Below the pieces are notes generated by a model. It saw only the letters and a program-made list of their open reading frames with translations, was not told where the DNA came from and ran no database searches. Made by a program: the position numbers and the translations under genes. From positions 310,001 through 374,000 of IMG/VR virus record IMGVR_UViG_3300036715_004471: a DNA stretch of 64,000 nt; one strand, given 5' to 3'. This document shows, one piece after another, positions 9,554 to 64,000 of this stretch. Within the stretch, counting starts at the first letter, position 1, and the number at the start of each line of letters is the position of its first letter.

Positions 9554-9805
9554 TCACTTAAGCATTTTACCTAGTAATTTCCCAAACCAAAACGGAAATT
9601 CAGAAATTAATACAAGAATCATTACAAATAAGAAAAAAGGGAACCCCGCAATAGTGCAAATGATGTTATCAATATCGATATCTTGGATTAAACCAAGATG
9701 CTGACCTTTTGATGCAAGATATCCTTTGTATATGGCTTTGATTGTAAAACCGCCAAATAATACTATCATGGCAAAAAAGAAATAAATAACAAGGGCTATT
9801 AACAT
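9554..9805 (-). CDS. small membrane protein
   Basis: Two hydrophobic segments. Confidence 0.6.
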   Translation of the reverse strand: MLIALVIYFFFAMIVLFGGFTIKAIYKGYLASKGQHLGLIQDIDIDNIICTIAGFPFFLFVMILVLISEFPFWFGKLLGKMLK

Positions 9806-10785
9806 TATTTGCTTAACTCCAACATTCTTTCAATAGAAATCCTTGCTTGATTCATTAGTTCATCTGGCAAGAAAATTTGTGGTTGTAGATTTTTCAATGA
9901 AAGATAAACTTTTTCCAAAGTATTTTTCTTCATGAAAGGACATTCATTGCAAGCACAATTTGCTTCTGGGGGCGCAGGAATAAATGTCTTATCAGGCGCT
10001 GCCTTTTGCATCTGATGTAAAATACCAGATTCAGTGGCTACAATGAATTCTTTATTTGGATCTTTGATTGCAAAGTTTAGAATACCAGTAGTAGATCCAA
10101 TATAATCAGCCATCTTTAAAATGGATTCTTCACATTCAGGATGAGCTAATACCAAAGCTTTTGGATAACGCTCTTTAAGACCAATGAGTTTTCTTTCACT
10201 GAATGTTTCATGAACAATACAGCTGCCCTGCCAAAGGACCATATCTCTTTTTAGTTTTTTCGATAAGAATGCCCCTAAATTCTTATCGGGGGCGAAAAGA
10301 ATAGTCTTATCTTTTGAAACAGCATTAACTATTCTTTCAGCATTAGAAGAAGTGCAAATATAATCTGAAAGTGCTTTTACTTCTGCGGAACAGTTAATAT
10401 AACTAATCGTTACAAGATTAGGATCCACTTCTTCTTTTAGTTTTTCTTGTAACTTAAAGAGGTCTGAGGCTTTACAACCATCTGCTAATGAACAGCCGGC
10501 TTCTAAATCAGGAAGCACTACAATTTTACTAGGATTGAGTATTTTGGCGGTTTCAGCCATGAAATGAACCCCCGCAAAACAAATAACATCGGCTTGAGTC
10601 TTCGCCGCCTCCTGCGAAAGCTGCAAAGAATCACCAATAAAATCTGCTATGTCTTGTATTTCCGAGTCTTGATAGTAATGTGCCAAAATAACAGCATTAC
10701 GTTCTTTCTTGAGTTTTAGAATTTCTTTTTCTAAATCCAAAGAAGGATCAATGTGATCCTGATCATACATTTTTAGATGTTTCAT
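9805..10785 (-). CDS. nadA: quinolinate synthase A
   Basis: [62 protein letters not shown]. Start moved to 10785 because the track's extension lies inside a tRNA. Confidence 0.95.
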
Positions 10786-10811
10786 TTCAAACTTTCCATT
10801 CTTATTTTTAG

Positions 10812-10884
10812 CTCCCCTGGAGGGATTCGAACCCACGCAAAACCGTTTTAGAGGCGGCTGCTCTAACCACTGAGCTACAGGGGA
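10812..10884 (-). tRNA. amber suppressor tRNA (anticodon CUA)
   Basis: TCCCCTG TA GCTC AGTGGTTA GAGC A GCCGC CTCTAAA ACGGT TTTGC GTGGG TTCGAAT CCCTC CAGGGGA G. U33 precedes CTA (10849-10851); U1-A72, G73; followed by CTA, not CCA. Confidence 0.85.
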
Positions 10885-51045: not shown

Positions 51046-51534
51046 TCATTCTGATTTTTCCGTCAAGGTCGGATTAATGTAAATAATATCCTCATCGTTT
51101 TTTACAGATTTGGCATATTCTACACAATTCCCGGTGCCTCCGGTCGTACCATCCCAAACAGCAATAAGTTTGTTACAATTGTCAACCATCCACTTATTTC
51201 TAATCTGCATTTTTTCATAAGAATAAGTGCCAGGACTAACAATAATAACTTCAGACGCTAAGCCAATTAATTTGGCATAAATCTTTTGAGATTTTTGTGG
51301 CCATCTTGATTCTTGATCTTTGAATGGAACTGCCGCAATAAATGGAATATTAAGTTTATGTGCTATGTTTGCCGCCCATTGATCTACTCCAAGAGCCATT
51401 CCAGTAATTACTTTATCTGGATTTAGGGCTTTTAGATTCTTTTCGATCTCTTGACAAACTTTTATATAGGTTGGATTAGGAAGATCATATCCTCCCAATT
51501 TATTCGGTCGATGTCCAGTAAATGCTACTATCAT
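51046..51534 (-). CDS. DUF1273/YspA SLOG-family protein
   Basis: AFTGHRP, TGMALGVDQWAA, RNKWMVD, WDGTTGGTGNCV. Confidence 0.88.
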   Translation of the reverse strand: MIVAFTGHRPNKLGGYDLPNPTYIKVCQEIEKNLKALNPDKVITGMALGVDQWAANIAHKLNIPFIAAVPFKDQESRWPQKSQKIYAKLIGLASEVIIVSPGTYSYEKMQIRNKWMVDNCNKLIAVWDGTTGGTGNCVEYAKSVKNDEDIIYINPTLTEKSE

Positions 51535-56082: not shown

Positions 56083-56757
56083 ATGATTATCTATCTTATA
56101 ACTAATTTGTTAAATAACAAACAATATGTTGGTCAAACCACTCAATCTCTTGAAAAGAGATGGCGCCGCCACTGTTGGAAATCTACTAGTAAAAATAGCA
56201 TGCCCATATGTCAAGCTATTTCAAAATATGGTAAAGAAAATTTCACCATAAAAATATTAACTTATTGTGAATCACAACAGCGGCTGAATGAACAAGAACT
56301 TTCCTATACTAATGAATTGAAAACATGGTCGCCCAATGGCTATAATTTAAGAGCTGGTGATGGGAGAGGATCTATGTCATTGGAAACTAAAAACAAAATA
56401 TCTACCGCCAATACAGGCAAAAAACGTTCTGTTGAAGCTAAACAAAATATGTCCAATGCCCATAAAGGTAAAATATTGTCATTAAAACAAAGACAAAAAA
56501 TATCAGATGCTAATAAAGGAAGTAATAATGCTTTTTATGGAAAACATCACACGCAAGAAAGCATTGATAAATTTTCTAAAACTTACACCATAATTTCACC
56601 GGAAGGTGAAATTATGATTATAAAAAATATGGCAGAACATTGTCGAAAATATAATCTTCATAAAGGAAATATGAATTCTATGGTTAAAGGCAATAGACCA
56701 TATTGTCAAGGATGGACTTTATACAAAGAAAGTTATTCAGTACCTTCCAATTTGTAA
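56083..56757 (+). CDS. GIY-YIG homing endonuclease with NUMOD3 repeats
   Basis: IYLITNLLNNKQYVGQT, PNGYNL, GKHHTQES. Confidence 0.9.
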   Translation: MIIYLITNLLNNKQYVGQTTQSLEKRWRRHCWKSTSKNSMPICQAISKYGKENFTIKILTYCESQQRLNEQELSYTNELKTWSPNGYNLRAGDGRGSMSLETKNKISTANTGKKRSVEAKQNMSNAHKGKILSLKQRQKISDANKGSNNAFYGKHHTQESIDKFSKTYTIISPEGEIMIIKNMAEHCRKYNLHKGNMNSMVKGNRPYCQGWTLYKESYSVPSNL

Positions 56758-57212
56758 ATACAAACTTTAATATCTTTTGTTTCAACATATTTTGTGAAAT
56801 TATTTAATACGCCAAGATAATATTCCCAATTTCCGCCCGCCGCCCCACAAGCAATTTTCCAAGGGAAAGCAATGCTTTCTAAATCTGGAATCTGAGCAAT
56901 TTTTAACAAACAATTGTAAAAATATTTTTGTCTTGCTAATGTTCCATCTAATGATGAATCAGTATATTTTGGAGAGCCCGGATAATATTGACCCAACATA
57001 TTAATTACATATCTTTGGTCTTTACCATTTCCTGCAATAACAATTGATCCTGGAGTGCTAGGAATAGTTCTTCCAGAATAAATGTCTGCATAGGGATATT
57101 GTATAAAAACATCTTTTGATAAATGAGCCGCTCTTTTAGTTATGCAATTAGTTTGATGACAAAGATATTTTTCTTTACTATCAAAAATATTTCCTGATAT
57201 TATTTCAATCAT
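56733..57212 (-). CDS. macrodomain ADP-ribosylhydrolase (TARG1/DarG-like)
   Basis: IISGNIF..HQTNC, VINMLGQY, IAFPWKIACGAAGGNW. Confidence 0.8.
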   Translation of the reverse strand: MIEIISGNIFDSKEKYLCHQTNCITKRAAHLSKDVFIQYPYADIYSGRTIPSTPGSIVIAGNGKDQRYVINMLGQYYPGSPKYTDSSLDGTLARQKYFYNCLLKIAQIPDLESIAFPWKIACGAAGGNWEYYLGVLNNFTKYVETKDIKVCIYKLEGTE

Positions 57213-57292
57213 AAATAATCCGTTATATTTTCTAAAGCCCAATCATTAATTTTTAGCCCATAACCAAAACTGGCAGTTGCGTCAATTCCCAT
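57209..57292 (-). CDS. 27-aa peptide between the PARP and macrodomain genes
   Basis: AGGAG RBS; MGIDATASFGYGLKINDWALENITDYL*; ATGA overlap with the macrodomain start. Confidence 0.45.
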   Translation of the reverse strand: MGIDATASFGYGLKINDWALENITDYL

Positions 57293-57304
57293 AAATACTC
57301 CTAA

Positions 57305-58804
57305 TTATTTTACCTGAGTTTCAAATTCAATGATGTAACGTAAGCAATGTTGTTGTTCGGGTCCGGTTGGACTGTAAGTAATCAACTCATCGTTGTATAC
57401 TGCGCTTCCAGCTTTAGCGAAAACGGAATGATTAGGGGCAATGCTCTTTTTGGAATAAAAATGTGAGTTATTCACTATTTTTTGATTACCAAATGCCACG
57501 TCTCCTAAAAATAGGTAAGCAGTTTTATTACCACCTTGTGCCCAATATGAGCCTTTGACATCGCAGTAATTAATGGATTTGGTGCTATTGGTTGCCCAAT
57601 AAATACCGTCACCATACATAGATCCTGCATGTGCAACGCCTGATGGTCTAATCAAAAGACCTTTGGTAGTGATACCAATCATATTGGCGCGACGAGTTCC
57701 ATGCCAGCCAGGACATACATTGGCTGTTTTATATATTTCTTGCAATTCTTCTGGAACGTCTGGACGGGTTTTGATAAGCTTGGCGTAAACTTCTGAAGGA
57801 GTTTGTTTGCCACATTTCTTGGCAATTTCTTCTGCCACTGAAACAAATCTTTCTTCTTCGTCTTTACGATTAACTTTGAAAATCTTATGAGTTTTTAATT
57901 TACCTAAGAAAGAATGATTTCCAGCTCTGGTGCCATGTAACATGGCATCCAACCATTTCCAAGTTGGAGAATTAGGATCAATATATGCTAGATCGGCATT
58001 CAAAGTTGCATATTGCGAATCAACCGCACTCTTTTTAGACATAACGCTTTGAACATTCTTAGCATCATTGAAAACATCAAGAATATCAAATGCTTTATCT
58101 AATTTATCATCGGAATCCAAACGTAATACATCTGCATTAATTCTGGTATATCCAAAATTGTGTGGAATATTGGAATAATAAGAATTGGTCAATTTGTTCA
58201 ACTCATCTGTATCTGGTTTTTTAGCATGAACAATTTTGCGGGCTTCTTCTAAGATATCTTTGCCTTTACCAATTTGATCAACAGATAATTGACCTAAAGG
58301 ACATTTTTTGGTGTCTAGATTTAATTCAATGAATTCGGCAGTAACTCCGAACCAAGTTCTTACTAGGTCTTGAACTTCTGGATGAAGTTTAGAATCTTCT
58401 TTTACTTCTTCAACTTTAATCCCGACTTTTTGTAAATCAGAAACCGAAACTTTTGACACTTCGATTTTAGATTTACCAACTTCCGATCCTACATCTGCTT
58501 TAACCAACTTGACTTCAACATAACCTTTTTTGACTTTGGATTTGATAATCTTGTCGGATTCTGTTTCAGCATGTGATTGGCTATTGCAAATACGATATTC
58601 CTTTGCAATAGTTCCTCCAACTCTACCATAGTTGGTATAAATTCTAGCCTCTCCACTAGGAGCAATTTGAATTTCCAAATTATAGAACTTATTGGAATTG
58701 TTGACAATATCAGTAAAATTGAGAGTGGTTCTTCTAACCACATCAAAATTATTGGAAAACTTAGGTTCCGCGCCAGCGGAATAAGCAACTAATTTTTCAG
58801 CCAC
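57305..58804 (-). CDS. poly(ADP-ribose) polymerase-like protein (WGR, regulatory and catalytic domains)
   Basis: NSNKFY..YGRVG (WGR); PLGQLS..QI, YYSNIPHNFG (regulatory); WHGTR, MYGDGIYWA..KSINY, NDELITY (H-Y-E triad). Confidence 0.9.
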   Translation of the reverse strand: MAEKLVAYSAGAEPKFSNNFDVVRRTTLNFTDIVNNSNKFYNLEIQIAPSGEARIYTNYGRVGGTIAKEYRICNSQSHAETESDKIIKSKVKKGYVEVKLVKADVGSEVGKSKIEVSKVSVSDLQKVGIKVEEVKEDSKLHPEVQDLVRTWFGVTAEFIELNLDTKKCPLGQLSVDQIGKGKDILEEARKIVHAKKPDTDELNKLTNSYYSNIPHNFGYTRINADVLRLDSDDKLDKAFDILDVFNDAKNVQSVMSKKSAVDSQYATLNADLAYIDPNSPTWKWLDAMLHGTRAGNHSFLGKLKTHKIFKVNRKDEEERFVSVAEEIAKKCGKQTPSEVYAKLIKTRPDVPEELQEIYKTANVCPGWHGTRRANMIGITTKGLLIRPSGVAHAGSMYGDGIYWATNSTKSINYCDVKGSYWAQGGNKTAYLFLGDVAFGNQKIVNNSHFYSKKSIAPNHSVFAKAGSAVYNDELITYSPTGPEQQHCLRYIIEFETQVK

Positions 58805-58813
58805 ATTAACCTC

Positions 58814-60007
58814 TTATTGATCTTTTAATCTTTTTGCCAAGTCTTCTGCATATTGAGCTAACCAACTATTAGTGTAATCTACTTCTGATTCGTCTTCGGA
58901 TGCTCTAATTATTTCTTCTACTTTTCCGGCAGGTAAATGATCTCTCATTAATTCGTATAAGAAACTAGTTAAACGACCGTTCAATTTAATTTTTCCTGAA
59001 CGTTCGGCTAATCCTTTATTCTTTTCTCTATTTTTAACTACTTGTTTTTGTGACGACACGTAATCATCACATTGCTTCATCTTAACATCATTATAAATCA
59101 TGATATGATTTTAACTCTTTCTCGACAAATAATTTTAATAAGACCAATTTTCTGGATCATTTATATTGGGAGATGAATCTCCCAAATCATCTGCCAAAGA
59201 CGCATGAATTTCATCAATAACTTCATAATAAATATCTTTGATATCGTAGAAATCTTTGAGATGATCTGAAATCAACCCAAATCTTCTGGATGCCTCAGTA
59301 ATTGCCATTTCTTTAATCAAAAATTCATCAATCATGAGTCACAAGTCTTTCTAAAATTACATTAATGCAAAAACTAATAGTTCCACCAGCCAAAATCCAT
59401 AAAACGAATTGAATAGCTGACCAATCTTTATATGGAGCGGATAATAAATACACAATCCATCCAGCGTGACAGCCAGAACAGAAATAACATGAGAAGAGTT
59501 TATAAAAGAAAACTCCTACATATTTATTAATCATTAACTTATTACGAAGCCAACTAATGATTCCCCAAGGACCTTCTGTTTCTTTAACCAAGAAGGTCAA
59601 ACCAAAAATCGCCAAAATACTTAGCAATGTCATAAGAATGCCCCAAGTTTGTTGAGTTTGAATATGACATTCTCGAAATACTTCTTAACAGAATTTTTCT
59701 TTCGAGTTTTGATTTGCGGGACATTACTTACCAAATAAAAACAATTAGCGATGGGTAAGTCATCCCAGGAAACGGACCACATTGATTTGTATTCTGGTAC
59801 GAATTGCAATTTTCTTGAACAAAAATGCGGATACTGTACAGGACACGTACACCATGAATCTTTTTTGATTTTTTTCTTCTTTTTAGAAGAATCTCGCATT
59901 GTAATTTCAATAGGCTGATTATTTCTAATCTGCACAATATACTGACGAGAACCTATCACAGTTTCCAAATCCATTCCTTGGTAATATTCAATAATTGAGG
60001 TTTTCAT
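58814..60007 (-). CDS. four small ORFs (58814-59101, 59135-59335, 59328-59633 DUF1360-like membrane protein, 59630-60007)
   Basis: 59328 ORF has LFSCYFCSGCHAGW and TM helices; 59630 ORF ends KLNKLGAFL. Confidence 0.6.
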
Positions 60008-62864: not shown

Positions 62865-64000
62865 TTACTTCACCAAATCTAAGAAGTCTTCTTCTGAAAG
62901 AAGGATTGTACCTAACTTACGAGCTGCCACCGCCTTAGAACTAGTACTGTTCGGATCTGCAATTACCAGATAACTTAAACCTTTACTAACTGAATTCTTT
63001 ACGTCTCCGCCAGCATCAGCCGCCATCTTTTCCAAAACAGGTCTTTTGGTTTTCATTGATCCTGTAAAACAAACTGATTTGCTAGTTAAAACGCCCTTGG
63101 CTCTGATTTTGATTTTAACACCATTATCTAGTAATTCCAAGATCAAATCTTGATTTGAAATCAAACCATTTGCCAAAGACTTGGCTTTTACCGGACCCAA
63201 ACCTGGAACTTGTTCAAATTCATCAGCTGATAGTTGTCCAAACTTCTCCAAACTATCACACCCAGCATTCATGATGAGTTTAATAGTGGACTGCCCAATC
63301 ATAGGGATACTTAAAGCTCCAAGGAAAACTTCCAAAGGAACTTCTGCGGCTTGCCACAAAATATCATGACATTTCTGAGCAGATTTCTTGCCCATACGAT
63401 CTATACTAGATAAATCATCGACAGTTAACTCGTATAAGTCAGAAACTTTAACTACCTTACCTGTCCGAACCAATTTCTCAACTAAAGTATCTCCCCACTC
63501 TAATAGGTTGAGTTCTTTAATCCAATTCTTGATTCTGCCCACCACTTGTGCCGAACAAGTTAAACTGTTGGTACAGTTAAGATTTTCTCCAACCATTTCT
63601 ACTAATCCTCCACACTCCGGGCAATTAGTTGGAGCCTGCAATATGGTACCGGTGCTTTTAATCAATTCTTCAACACGCGGAATAACATCATTTGCTCTTG
63701 AGACTAAAACTGTAGCCCCAATATCCAAGCCTAATTCCTGGACATAAGCTAAGTTATATAGACTTGCTCTACTAACAGATGCTCCAACTAAGATCACCGG
63801 ATCTACCGTAGCAACAGGAGTTAATCTTCCGCTATTACCAACCTGCCAAACAATATTTCTAATAACAGACTCTCTAGCCTCATTATCGAATTTGAAAGCA
63901 ATAGCTCCTTTAGGTCTTAAATCTTTATCTCCCAAAGCAGCTTGGATAGCCAGATCGTTCACTCTAACGACCAAACCATCAATATCATAGTCTAATTTAT
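62865..64000 (-). CDS. ligA: NAD-dependent DNA ligase (3' part; starts beyond the window)
   Basis: DIDGLVVR, AIAFKF, QVGNSGRLTPVA, RANDVIP, CPECG Zn finger, HhH motifs, BRCT (FTGSM..SSKAVAARKLG). Confidence 0.95.
   Translation of the reverse strand, partial: KLDYDIDGLVVRVNDLAIQAALGDKDLRPKGAIAFKFDNEARESVIRNIVWQVGNSGRLTPVATVDPVILVGASVSRASLYNLAYVQELGLDIGATVLVSRANDVIPRVEELIKSTGTILQAPTNCPECGGLVEMVGENLNCTNSLTCSAQVVGRIKNWIKELNLLEWGDTLVEKLVRTGKVVKVSDLYELTVDDLSSIDRMGKKSAQKCHDILWQAAEVPLEVFLGALSIPMIGQSTIKLIMNAGCDSLEKFGQLSADEFEQVPGLGPVKAKSLANGLISNQDLILELLDNGVKIKIRAKGVLTSKSVCFTGSMKTKRPVLEKMAADAGGDVKNSVSKGLSYLVIADPNSTSSKAVAARKLGTILLSEEDFLDLVK

Follow-up and report, generated by a model that had tools for sequence, protein, structure and literature searches.

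The window analysed here, 64,000 nucleotides from the 446,541-bp (~446-kb) record of a tailed phage, encodes on one strand a PARP of 499 amino acids and, 92 bp downstream, a predicted macrodomain hydrolase (Table 1), and on balance we hold it probable that the phage carries a module for reversible (poly)ADP-ribosylation, probably triggered by DNA breaks, in which that macrodomain acts together with the PARP. In such a module the WGR domain of the PARP2/3-like writer would sense nicked or broken DNA; the helical domain would keep the PARP off; and the ART domain, with its triad H368-Y402-E473, would build ADP-ribose from NAD+ on the PARP itself or on nearby proteins—or else, possibly, on DNA ends. 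The chains would then be trimmed by a PARG plus the ARH hydrolase(s) encoded in the same genome, and the SCO6735/BT1257-type macrodomain would take off the last, substrate-linked ADP-ribose, with NadA, an NAPRTase and an NAD+-dependent ligase sharing one cofactor economy with the PARP. We infer that the PARP makes poly(ADP-ribose) from NAD+, that its activity is boosted by DNA breaks, and that the macrodomain acts on its products, the purpose of which cycle would be to deal with DNA damage or with replication nicks in the infected cell.

Table 1. Features of the window that bear on the proposed module (position 1 is the first nucleotide of the window).
Feature	Position	Strand	Evidence and remarks
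NadA, quinolinate synthase (NAD+ de novo synthesis)	9805..10836	-	Pfam PF02445 1.9e-119; context only
YpsA-family SLOG protein	51046..51534	-	Pfam PF06908 4.7e-19; context only
GIY-YIG/NUMOD3 homing endonuclease	56083..56757	+	Pfam GIY-YIG 8.7e-12, NUMOD3 2e-16; phrog_314 1.1e-42
Macrodomain hydrolase (predicted), 159 aa	56733..57212	-	AF2 model, Foldseek, VIA-align
27-aa ORF	57209..57292	-	AGGAG ribosome-binding site; stop overlaps macrodomain ATG as ATGA
PARP, 499 aa, WGR-HD-ART order	57305..58804	-	GTG start, AAGAGG ribosome-binding site
ART catalytic domain, aa 288-499	57308..57943	-	Pfam PF00644 3.9e-19 (aa 288-465)
Clade-specific ~40-aa helical insert, aa 321-360	57725..57844	-	directly before His strand
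Helical regulatory (HD, PARP_reg) domain, aa 138-263	58016..58393	-	Pfam PF02877 9.8e-23, profile positions 1-127/135
WGR domain, aa 26-98	58511..58729	-	Pfam PF05406 4.3e-14
95-aa ORF	58814..59101	-	stop 9 nt upstream of PARP start, same strand
NAD+-dependent DNA ligase, C-terminal part (OB, HhH, BRCT)	62865..64000	-	extends past window

A preliminary description, made from the DNA alone, had proposed for the PARP a WGR-regulatory-catalytic layout with an H-Y-E triad, and on both points it was borne out: the three Pfam HMMs matched in that order, all of them above the curated cut-offs, and H368, Y402 and E473 (codons 57701-57703, 57599-57601 and 57386-57388), together with Y413 (57566-57568), were invariant across 121 homologues as well as four further lineages of phage PARPs. 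H368 and Y402 align with the PARP1 motifs WHGSR and GKGIYFA, their counterparts there being, as we take it, H862 and Y896; E473, as judged from motif and position and not from a residue-level alignment to a solved structure, would be the equivalent of PARP1 E988. The triad is no guarantee of polymer formation, since PARP3 and PARP4 have H-Y-E and are nevertheless mono-transferases. In the WGR motif, Y59-G60-R61, a Tyr takes the Trp position, with Y59 and R61 being invariant and G60 present in 120 of the 121 homologues. The closest solved relatives by sequence were the human PARP1 WGR-HD-ART (4dqy, 3.7e-28) and PARP2, and the AF2 model (pLDDT 76) found as its top Foldseek matches the DNA-break-bound WGR-HD-ART structures of PARP1 and PARP2 (7s6m, 2.4e-25; 6x0l, 1e-23). 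The HD domain is helical in that model; the linker ahead of it (aa ~105-137) was modelled with low confidence and is probably disordered; and the clade-specific insert forms three helices. This insert is found neither in PARP1 nor in other phage PARPs, with the HMMER alignments breaking at 320/367, which comparison was made on a MAFFT alignment that included the PARPs of FBKp34, XacN1, phi4:1 and a further locus (L019). The dN/dS of 0.10 indicates purifying selection on the gene.

Among the systems most similar to this one are the bacterial PARP-PARG pairs of Herpetosiphon aurantiacus and Clostridioides difficile CD160. They display the same WGR-HD-ART order with a catalytic Glu, their genomes also encode a bacterial-type PARG, and the terminal unit can be handled by macrodomain hydrolases; HaPARP is active only in the presence of DNA, and what HaPARP and the CD160 PARP make is undone by the PARG of the respective organism (PMC8120803, PMC5966428). 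In contrast to those pairs, the present one is phage-encoded, with the PARG remote from the PARP and a SCO6735-type macrodomain as the immediate partner, and the PARP itself departs from the bacterial enzymes in its insert, its N-terminal extension and its YGR in place of WGR. A scan of genome contigs for bacterial PARP contexts returned two short MAG contigs only. With human PARP2 and PARP3 the phage protein shares the lack of zinc fingers or BRCT and a functional core of WGR, HD and ART, in which the WGR would be the sole DNA-break sensor, and PARP2 on a DNA break was among the top fold matches (7aeo as well as 6x0l); but the phage protein is no more than ~22-25% identical to PARP1 and PARP2 in sequence, an HPF1-like partner was not detected, and the linker and insert are absent from the human enzymes.

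Phage PARPs have been noted in silico before, and that of the window is a further such case. Those of XacN1 (BBA65562), Cellulophaga phi4:1 (gp031), Klebsiella 05F01 and FBKp34, and Aeromonas Aeh1 are likewise encoded by large phages and possess H-Y-E catalytic domains, in several instances with WGR and regulatory domains (PMC4245714, PMC7824862), and they are 25-37% identical to the PARP studied here. Where a macrodomain is detectable in those phages, however, it is not adjacent to the PARP: in XacN1 it lies ~218 kb away, in phi4:1 there is a weak match only, and in FBKp34, whose PARP is a distant one, a distant member of the macrodomain family is encoded 2.4 kb upstream. The hypothetical gene that follows the phi4:1 PARP was also considered as a macrodomain and rejected (hhalign probability 0.06%). 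No phage PARP had biochemical support in the literature that we searched, which counts against the module.

The macrodomain gene was listed as an ORF of 169 aa with a TTG start (56733..57242, minus strand), but because the homologues measure 159-160 aa we take the true start to be the ATG at 57212. The AF2 model (pLDDT 92.7) matched many macrodomains in Foldseek with a probability of 1.00, and in VIA-align the best structural match was DarG (Z 18.1, rmsd 2.2 over 142 residues), followed by BT1257 (17.6), TARG1 and Poa1p (16.8 each) and SCO6735 (15.2), with the MacroD and alphavirus macrodomains trailing at Z <=14.5. A TARG1/DarG-like macrodomain had been proposed, and the fold was upheld, but the catalytic Lys of TARG1 and DarG is missing: Gln75 stands at the position of TARG1 Lys84 and DarG Lys80, and Ala125 at that of TARG1 Asp125, which pair of substitutions defines the SCO6735 subclass (PMC5087735, PMC9411070; the residue numbering was reconciled with the former). 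The profile also aligned with BT1257 (1.2e-4), HMMER placing Q75 on Q82 and A125 on A128. N22 and Q75 are present in all 121 macrodomain sequences and H19 in 120, so that the His and Asn of the H-x-x-N motif (SCO6735 His24, Asn27) are conserved, as is the phosphate loop xIxCGxAGG, here C122-G-A-A-G-G127; the dN/dS was 0.17. Several candidates were rejected along the way: TARG1 proper, since Gln75 and Ala125 replace the Lys84-Asp125 dyad; DarG proper, given the Gln at the Lys80 position and PADLOC DarG models that did not match at E<=1; and a MacroD-type or Pfam Macro protein, PF01661 having no match in the genome. The protein had no match in Pfam, NCBIfam or PADLOC, and matched phrog_335 (3.8e-12). 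In difference from DarTG, moreover, there is no DarT neighbour, the genes on either side being the PARP and a homing endonuclease.

The affinity with SCO6735 and BT1257 nonetheless has its limits. The phage protein is only ~24% identical to BT1257; its first loop is A-A-H (A-A-H or S-A-G in the family) and not the Gly-rich GxG; a longer mobile loop follows Gln75; and in 119 of the 121 sequences Gln20 occupies the position of SCO6735 Val25, for which residue a role via the backbone oxygen has been proposed and where Val or Ile is reportedly specific to the subclass (PMC9411070). On account of Gln20, we file the protein within the ALC1-like class as a sister group nearest to SCO6735/BT1257 and not as a strict member, and the first loop together with Gln20 suggests that its substrate may differ, which weighs against the module. 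The SCO6735 subclass is UV-inducible and hydrolyses PARP-made protein mono-ADP-ribose (PMC5087735, PMC9411070), but works most efficiently on DarT-modified DNA, SCO6735 itself stripping thymidine-linked ADP-ribose off DNA better than DarG does and saving cells from DarT (PMC9411070). By analogy, the phage macrodomain may hydrolyse both protein- and thymidine-linked ADP-ribose.

Outside the window, the same genome encodes a bacterial-type PARG—a 276-aa ORF (L025:5248-6078, minus strand) located 63 kb from the PARP—that matched PF10021 (PARG_cat_microb) at 1.5e-48 to 2.7e-47 and has an intact GGG-X7-QEE signature (GGGFLAGAMAQEE at residue 106), in agreement with the GGG-X6-8-QEE pattern, along with ARH hydrolase(s) elsewhere (5.6e-67). 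Two near-complete relatives, G001 and G002, likewise encode the PARG, and the genomes of the other PARP phages (XacN1, phi4:1, 05F01, FBKp34, Aeh1) lack it; this absence and the 63-kb distance count against the module. For polymer formation by the PARP, a PARG in the genome is indirect support only. Perina et al. (2014) consider PAR metabolism as complete when a PARP is accompanied by a PARG or an ARH3 and by a terminal ADP-ribose hydrolase, and the 446,541-bp record contains a PARP, a PARG, the ARH family and a macrodomain of TARG1-like fold. The idea of a writer and its erasers was in this manner strengthened, as it was by the sibling genome G011, which is complete, DTR-bounded and syntenic, and which lacks the PARP, the macrodomain and the PARG together while retaining NADAR and the flanking genes.

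Across the relatives, the macrodomain gene lay downstream of the PARP on the same strand in all 16 loci that had a full-length PARP, and a full PARP was upstream in 25 of the 28 orthologous macrodomain loci, the order of the block being PARP, variable cargo, macrodomain, NADAR. The cargo, which includes UvdE (2e-49) and a Pyr_excise-like gene, extends over 0.4-2.4 kb, and NADAR directly follows the macrodomain at 22 of the 28 loci; the genome of the window lacks NADAR and has kept the macrodomain, and none of UvdE, the Pyr_excise-like gene, the radical SAM gene, the 110-aa gene and NADAR was found relocated elsewhere in it. The proposed linkage of PARP and macrodomain thus stood as synteny at the 16 PARP loci, but the tight adjacency is specific to the window's genome, and the distant members of the macrodomain family (<=50% identity) have no PARP within 6 kb. 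At two loci (L053 and L061) an intact macrodomain lies beside a truncated PARP, which arrangement implies that the macrodomain has value without the writer. These truncated PARPs, the frequent adjacency to NADAR and the distant macrodomains that lack a PARP weigh against the module, and conserved adjacency inside a single syntenic clade may reflect common descent only.

The phage origin of the record is established by its portal (1.9e-52) and large terminase (9.9e-58), which ruled out a giant virus of eukaryotes; an NCLDV capsid search also gave no match, although this search and that for Gp23 were run without a positive control and carry little weight. No GenBank phage matched the locus by megablast. 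Microbial mats and freshwater (mats, sediments and lakes) are the habitats. NadA, a SLOG protein and an NAD-dependent ligase, all three claimed for the window in the preliminary description, were indeed found there; the entire ligase gene encodes 631 aa in the full genome, which also encodes an NAPRTase. LigA, a UvrD helicase and a Dam methylase are close to the PARP-macrodomain locus, and these genes, the UvdE and Pyr_excise-like cargo of the relatives and the habitats lend the surroundings a DNA-repair flavour that favours the module. RNA-repair genes are also plentiful in the window (Rnl1- and Rnl2-like ligases, two PNKP-like genes, RlaP, a Thg1-like gene and RNase T).

We weighed other readings of the same locus. 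The macrodomain might mainly serve counter-defence, stripping the ADP-ribose of a host DarT-type enzyme off phage DNA, in the relatives together with NADAR, and its position next to the PARP would then be inherited synteny. The subclass signature (H19, N22, Q75), the DNA activity of SCO6735 and its rescue of cells from DarT (PMC9411070), the rank of DarG as top fold match, the NADAR directly downstream in most orthologous loci, and the persistence of the macrodomain where the PARP is truncated or, in distant members, not nearby, all point in that direction; yet in G011 NADAR is kept and the macrodomain is gone with the PARP and the PARG, so that the macrodomain tracks the PARP and not NADAR. 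Furthermore, a full-length PARP was never seen without the macrodomain, the PADLOC DarG models did not match, and the genome of the window has lost NADAR with its macrodomain still tightly coupled to the PARP, and we therefore regard this explanation as rather unlikely, though worth retaining. Somewhat less probable still, in our estimation, is a PARP that acts as a host-takeover effector in the manner of T4 Alt and Mod, but chain-making, with host RNA polymerase or nucleoid proteins as targets and with erasers that restrain the unintended modification of phage proteins or serve to recycle ADP-ribose. Such a role was proposed for jumbo-phage PARPs by Iyer et al. (PMC7824862, PMC9503650) and would suit a phage that makes its own NAD+ through NadA and NAPRTase and whose PARP is an accessory gene, missing from a complete relative; but the WGR and HD imply DNA-break-dependent activation and not constitutive effector activity, the gene is situated away from the head and packaging genes, the enzyme has no fused packaged carrier domain, and the cargo beside the PARP in the relatives belongs to DNA repair and not to transcription takeover.

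That the macrodomain acts on soluble derivatives of ADP-ribose (immune signals, O-acyl-ADPr, or the ADPr-1''-phosphate that arises in RNA repair) and is functionally unrelated to the PARP appears improbable to us, even though Iyer et al. argue that phage macrodomains mostly target small ADPr derivatives (PMC9503650), the ADPr-1''-P phosphatase Poa1p is close in fold, the window is full of RNA-repair genes, and JGI annotates the relatives of the protein as O-acetyl-ADP-ribose deacetylase. KptA/Tpt1, the maker of ADPr-1''-P, was not found in the genome, which result speaks against a KptA-linked RNA-repair role; the RNA-repair genes are 17-40 kb from the macrodomain gene and the PARP only 92 bp; and the macrodomain was lost along with the PARP and the PARG in G011. 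To a last variant, in which the PARP would mark DNA termini or bases of the phage itself or of the host with ADP-ribose as a transient protection or signal, and an unusually broad eraser set—comprising the SCO6735-like macrodomain, the NADAR of the relatives, the PARG and the ARH—would clear the mark before ligation or packaging, we assign the lowest probability of all; if true, the module would be a phage-run cycle of DNA ADP-ribosylation and not a protein-modification system.

Writer-and-eraser systems for ADP-ribose chains are known from cells and have been noted in phages before. The present clade provides a compact natural test set, with a writer, erasers of as many as four kinds (macrodomain, NADAR, PARG and ARH), an NAD+ supply of its own, and natural variants in the form of truncated PARPs, a sibling genome devoid of PARP, macrodomain and PARG, and UV-repair genes in the same slot. 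PAR signalling in a prokaryotic virus, the sensing of DNA breaks by WGR-only PARPs outside eukaryotes, and the use of SCO6735-type macrodomains for PARP reversal, anti-DarT defence or both are questions that can be addressed there. If the proteins prove to be unremarkable homologues that do what is expected of them, little more would be gained than the first phage PAR cycle to be demonstrated biochemically. In a peat metatranscriptome, a 171-nt contig was 99% identical to part of the PARP gene, which match is no demonstration of expression.

As to the smaller genes of the locus, the 27-aa ORF between PARP and macrodomain, initially regarded as a peptide, had to be reinterpreted. Its product is 44%, 37% and 50% identical to the N-termini of genes in three relatives (L007:5443-5775, L009:5701-6030 and L093:5200-5520, respectively), a search against the spacer alone gave the match at E 2.4e-6, and tblastn found no short-ORF counterpart in the relatives, so that a conserved micropeptide was ruled out; by sequence, the ORF is the N-terminal relic of a gene of ~106-110 aa, of which relatives have intact copies. 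Through the ATGA overlap and the AGGAG, the ORF may still serve to couple its translation to that of the macrodomain gene. The 95-aa ORF had no family match, and its atlas look-alikes gave nothing usable; homologues precede the PARP in four relatives (L002, L004, L005 and L012), but are also present in the PARP-less L093 and L094, and the ORF is thus not PARP-specific. Finally, the homing endonuclease gene is convergent with the macrodomain gene, overlapping its 3' end by 25 nt, and occupies the place that NADAR has in most relatives; in L093 an 86%-identical copy of the endonuclease adjoins NADAR.

On the minus strand, the genes for a 95-aa ORF, a full PARP, a 27-aa ORF, and a macrodomain protein (henceforth macro) are tightly packed. 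The PARP contains the Pfam WGR (4.3e-14), PARP_reg (9.8e-23), and PARP catalytic (3.9e-19) domains, which arrangement bears out the layout claimed in the preliminary description. By sequence, its closest solved structures were the WGR-HD-ART portion of human PARP1 (3.7e-28) and PARP2, and the top fold matches of its AlphaFold model (mean pLDDT 76) were the DNA-break-bound forms of PARP1 and PARP2 (2.4e-25 and 1e-23). The H-Y-E triad proposed earlier was likewise recovered: His368 and Tyr402 align with the PARP1 motifs WHGSR and GKGIYFA, while Glu473, within the conserved strand N-D-E-L-I-T-Y, is invariant in 121 homologues as well as in the PARPs of Klebsiella phage FBKp34, XacN1, phi4:1, and a 290-kb IMG/VR phage; since the local alignments to solved PARPs end before Glu473, its match to PARP1 Glu988 is judged by motif and position. 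The PARPs of this clade, whose genomes measure ~440-510 kb, are set apart by an extended N-terminus, a WGR-HD linker modelled at low confidence, a helical insert of ~40 residues (aa 321-360) immediately before the His strand, and the replacement of Trp by Tyr in the WGR motif. Among relatives the PARP dN/dS was 0.10.

Positions of the features discussed (window positions unless a locus is named; L-numbers are extracted loci with their own coordinates, from relatives or, for L025, L026, L033, and L034, from the whole record, G000)
Feature	Position	Strand	Remark
95-aa ORF	58814-59101	-	9-nt gap before PARP
PARP, 499 aa	57305-58804	-	GTG start after AAGAGG
27-aa ORF	57209-57292	-	AGGAG ribosome-binding site
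Macro	ATG at 57212, end at 56733	-	start overlaps 27-aa ORF stop as ATGA
GIY-YIG/NUMOD3 homing endonuclease	56083-56757	+	convergent with macro, overlapping its end
CTA-anticodon tRNA	10811-10884	-	overlaps first ~9 codons of NadA ORF as listed
RNA-repair/tRNA set	16421-39503; L026:1542-2339
PARG	L025:5248-6078	-	small GIY-YIG ORF overlaps its downstream end
Ro60/TROVE-vWA homologue, 520 aa	L025:6735-8297	-	~650 bp upstream of PARG gene
Second ARH gene	L034:1540-2488 (G000:405540-406488)	-	two adjacent ORFs
NAPRTase-family enzyme	L033:3804-4937		just past window end
Kelch-repeat protein	L026:3823-5019		just past window end
UvrD-like helicase	L026:5245-6930		just past window end
UV-damage repair genes in PARP-macro interval	L003:5780-6694; L017:6586-7500; L013:5935-6408		relatives; others also occur
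PARP remnant beside intact macro	L053:4921-5190; L061:3978-4463		relatives
Tandem PARP paralogues	L019:3173-6311		290-kb IMG/VR phage
PARP-less counterpart in G011	L093:4956-7348		compared with window 56083-59101

Two further PARP loci deserve mention. A 6.4-kb low-coverage contig binned in a 'Candidatus Berkiella' MAG (JBFWUT010000077.1) encodes a PARP 67% identical to that of the window, and most likely represents a wrongly binned piece of a phage of this clade, not a pointer to the host. The 290-kb phage carries two tandem WGR-containing PARP paralogues of 415 and 406 aa, with ~28-29% identity to the window PARP and a 185-aa gene between them; neither macro nor PARG was detected in that genome.

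The macro protein had no match in Pfam, NCBIfam, or PADLOC, and in PHROGs fell to phrog_335 (3.8e-12). Its model was confident (pLDDT 92.7, from a 34-sequence alignment), and VIA-align placed it nearest to DarG (Z 18.1), followed by BT1257 (17.6), TARG1 and Poa1p (16.8 each), SCO6735 (15.2), and the alphavirus and MacroD-type macrodomains (at most 14.5). The sole significant PDB sequence-profile match was BT1257 (1.2e-4), in whose alignment Gln75 falls on Gln82 and Ala125 on Ala128. Those positions correspond to the Lys84/Asp125 dyad of TARG1, and Gln plus Ala there is the defining mark of the SCO6735/BT1257 subclass; in SCO6735, whose gene is UV-inducible, Gln85 and Asn27 are essential, and the enzyme strips ADP-ribose put on proteins by PARPs as well as that attached to thymidine by DarT (Lalic et al., 2016, PMC5087735; Hlousek-Kasun et al., 2022, PMC9411070). 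Within the macro family H19 is conserved in 120 of 121 members, and N22 and Q75 in all 121; the phage protein nevertheless differs from SCO6735 in having Gln20 at the position of Val25 and A-A-H as its first loop. The initial label "TARG1/DarG-like" thus fits the fold but not the catalytic residues, and the protein is better regarded as a sister to the SCO6735/BT1257 subclass. Its dN/dS was 0.17.

The 27-aa peptide described downstream of the PARP does exist as an ORF, but no such short ORF was found in relatives. Its sequence resembles the N-terminus of a 106-110-aa gene (44, 37, and 50% identity in L007, L009, and L093, respectively; E 2.4e-6 upon searching the spacer alone), which gene immediately follows PARP in L007 and the 95-aa-ORF homologue in L093, where PARP is missing, and immediately precedes macro in L009. 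The ORF is a deletion relic, and may yet couple its translation to that of macro.

Each of the 16 full-length close IMG/VR relatives has macro downstream of PARP on the same strand, at a distance of 0.4-2.1 kb that is filled with variable cargo: UvdE (2.1e-49), a borderline Pyr_excise-like gene (1e-4; 155-175 aa, at the Pfam cut-off), a B12-radical-SAM protein, endonuclease-like genes, and others. UvdE and the Pyr_excise-like gene are absent from G000. When orthologous macro loci were defined by at least 51% identity (n=28), a full PARP was upstream in 25, PARP fragments only in two (L053 and L061; a C-terminal 90-aa or an N-terminal ~160-aa piece), and a contig edge in one; among the 27 more distant family members of full length (at most 50% identity), giant-virus MAG loci included, none had a PARP within 6 kb. 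The genome of L053 (79% complete) contained neither a PARP catalytic domain nor a PARG. In this small sample, with kinship ignored, the writer was never seen without macro, while macro occurred occasionally without an intact writer. NADAR (identity confirmed, 1.9e-31) follows macro in 22 of the 28 loci and has been lost from the window's genome, and PARG occurs in G001 and G002, two near-complete relatives that bear PARP, and was absent from four other PARP phages.

The syntenic loci L093 and L094 lack both PARP and macro, their order being Dam, o101, the 95-aa homologue, the 106-aa gene, other genes, NADAR, and GIY-YIG. L093 belongs to G011, whose 451,956-bp genome is complete, is bounded by direct terminal repeats, and shares the window's flanks (Dam, the 95-aa-ORF homologue, and a GIY-YIG gene 86% identical). 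Where the window has PARP and macro, G011 instead carries the 106-aa gene in intact form, a gene of 119 aa, and NADAR; nowhere in that genome is there a PARP, a macro-family member, or a PARG. The slot acts as an exchange site for cargo related to ADP-ribose. In a source-like microbial-mat metagenome (run X1), moreover, a ~40x contig joins window position 56717 to 58881, skipping macro, the relic, and PARP, with the window's own strain at ~7x; this joint is consistent with a co-occurring strain without the cassette and fits the relatives lacking PARP and macro.

Elsewhere in G000, outside the window, we found a bacterial-type PARG ~63 kb away (PF10021, 2.7e-47; GGGFLAGAMAQEE) and an ARH/DraG-family hydrolase (5.6e-67). 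The second ARH gene is split, one ORF covering profile positions 2-174 and the other 197-287, which could be due to a frameshift, decay into a pseudogene, or misassembly. A whole-genome search for KptA, Pfam-type Macro, and UvdE found none. The NadA, SLOG, and NAD-dependent ligase noticed at the outset were all located: NadA and a YpsA-type SLOG are in the window, along with a Dam-like methylase and a large RNA-repair set, and the complete ligase gene of G000 encodes 631 aa. NAD+ and DNA/RNA-repair functions abound in the stretch from NadA to the NAPRTase.

The most economical reading, held with modest confidence, is a reversible ADP-ribosylation module for DNA-damage or nick management: the PARP would sense DNA breaks and write ADP-ribose, PARG and ARH would shorten the chains, the SCO6735-like macro would take off the last unit, and phage enzymes would provide the NAD+. 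Its purpose we infer from the presence of UV-repair genes among the cargo of this slot, from the ligase and helicase close by, and from the occurrence in mats and lakes. The main rival, which we regard as rather unlikely, makes macro (with NADAR in relatives) an anti-DarT DNA-repair or counter-defence enzyme and the PARP a mere neighbour; yet SCO6735 acts on proteins and DNA alike, so that both the module and the anti-DarT function could hold. Host takeover through PARylation seems unlikely to us, and the processing of soluble ADP-ribose derivatives by macro distinctly improbable; the readings overlap, and these confidences are not meant to be summed.

Phage PARPs have already been listed (Perina et al., 2014, PMC4245714; Iyer et al., 2021, 2022, PMC7824862, PMC9503650), also in a 2024 jumbo-phage NAD+ study (PMC11662467), and assays exist for PARP-PARG systems of bacteria (PMC8120803, PMC5966428). 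An incomplete literature search found no report of a phage combining a PARP with a bacterial-type PARG, an ARH, and an SCO6735-type macro, nor any biochemical test of a phage PARP. The main value of the present system lies in its natural variants, which make it testable.

The 446,541-bp virus record, of which the window comprises bases 310001-374000, encodes a portal (phrog_16240, 1.9e-52) and a large terminase (phrog_675, 9.9e-58), which proteins, together with the dense gene packing under the standard code and the 11 tRNA genes found in the window by ARAGORN, indicate a tailed "megaphage." Near-identical DNA occurs in metagenomes of microbial mat, sediment, lake, freshwater, and wastewater. 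The ends of G000 are classed 'provirus' in IMG/VR, a label that is probably an artefact: phage genes occur throughout, CheckV completeness is 100%, and a sibling carries direct terminal repeats. The dense RNA-repair/tRNA set includes two Thg1-like 3'-5' polymerases, Rnl2-like and Rnl1-like RNA ligases, two PNKP-like kinase-phosphatases, RlaP, RNase T, and TyrRS besides the 11 tRNAs. The CTA-anticodon tRNA is an amber suppressor (labelled Pyl by ARAGORN), and of the 399 ORFs of at least 150 aa in the genome 33 end in TAG, the rarest stop, which combination may point to late-stage TAG readthrough or recoding.
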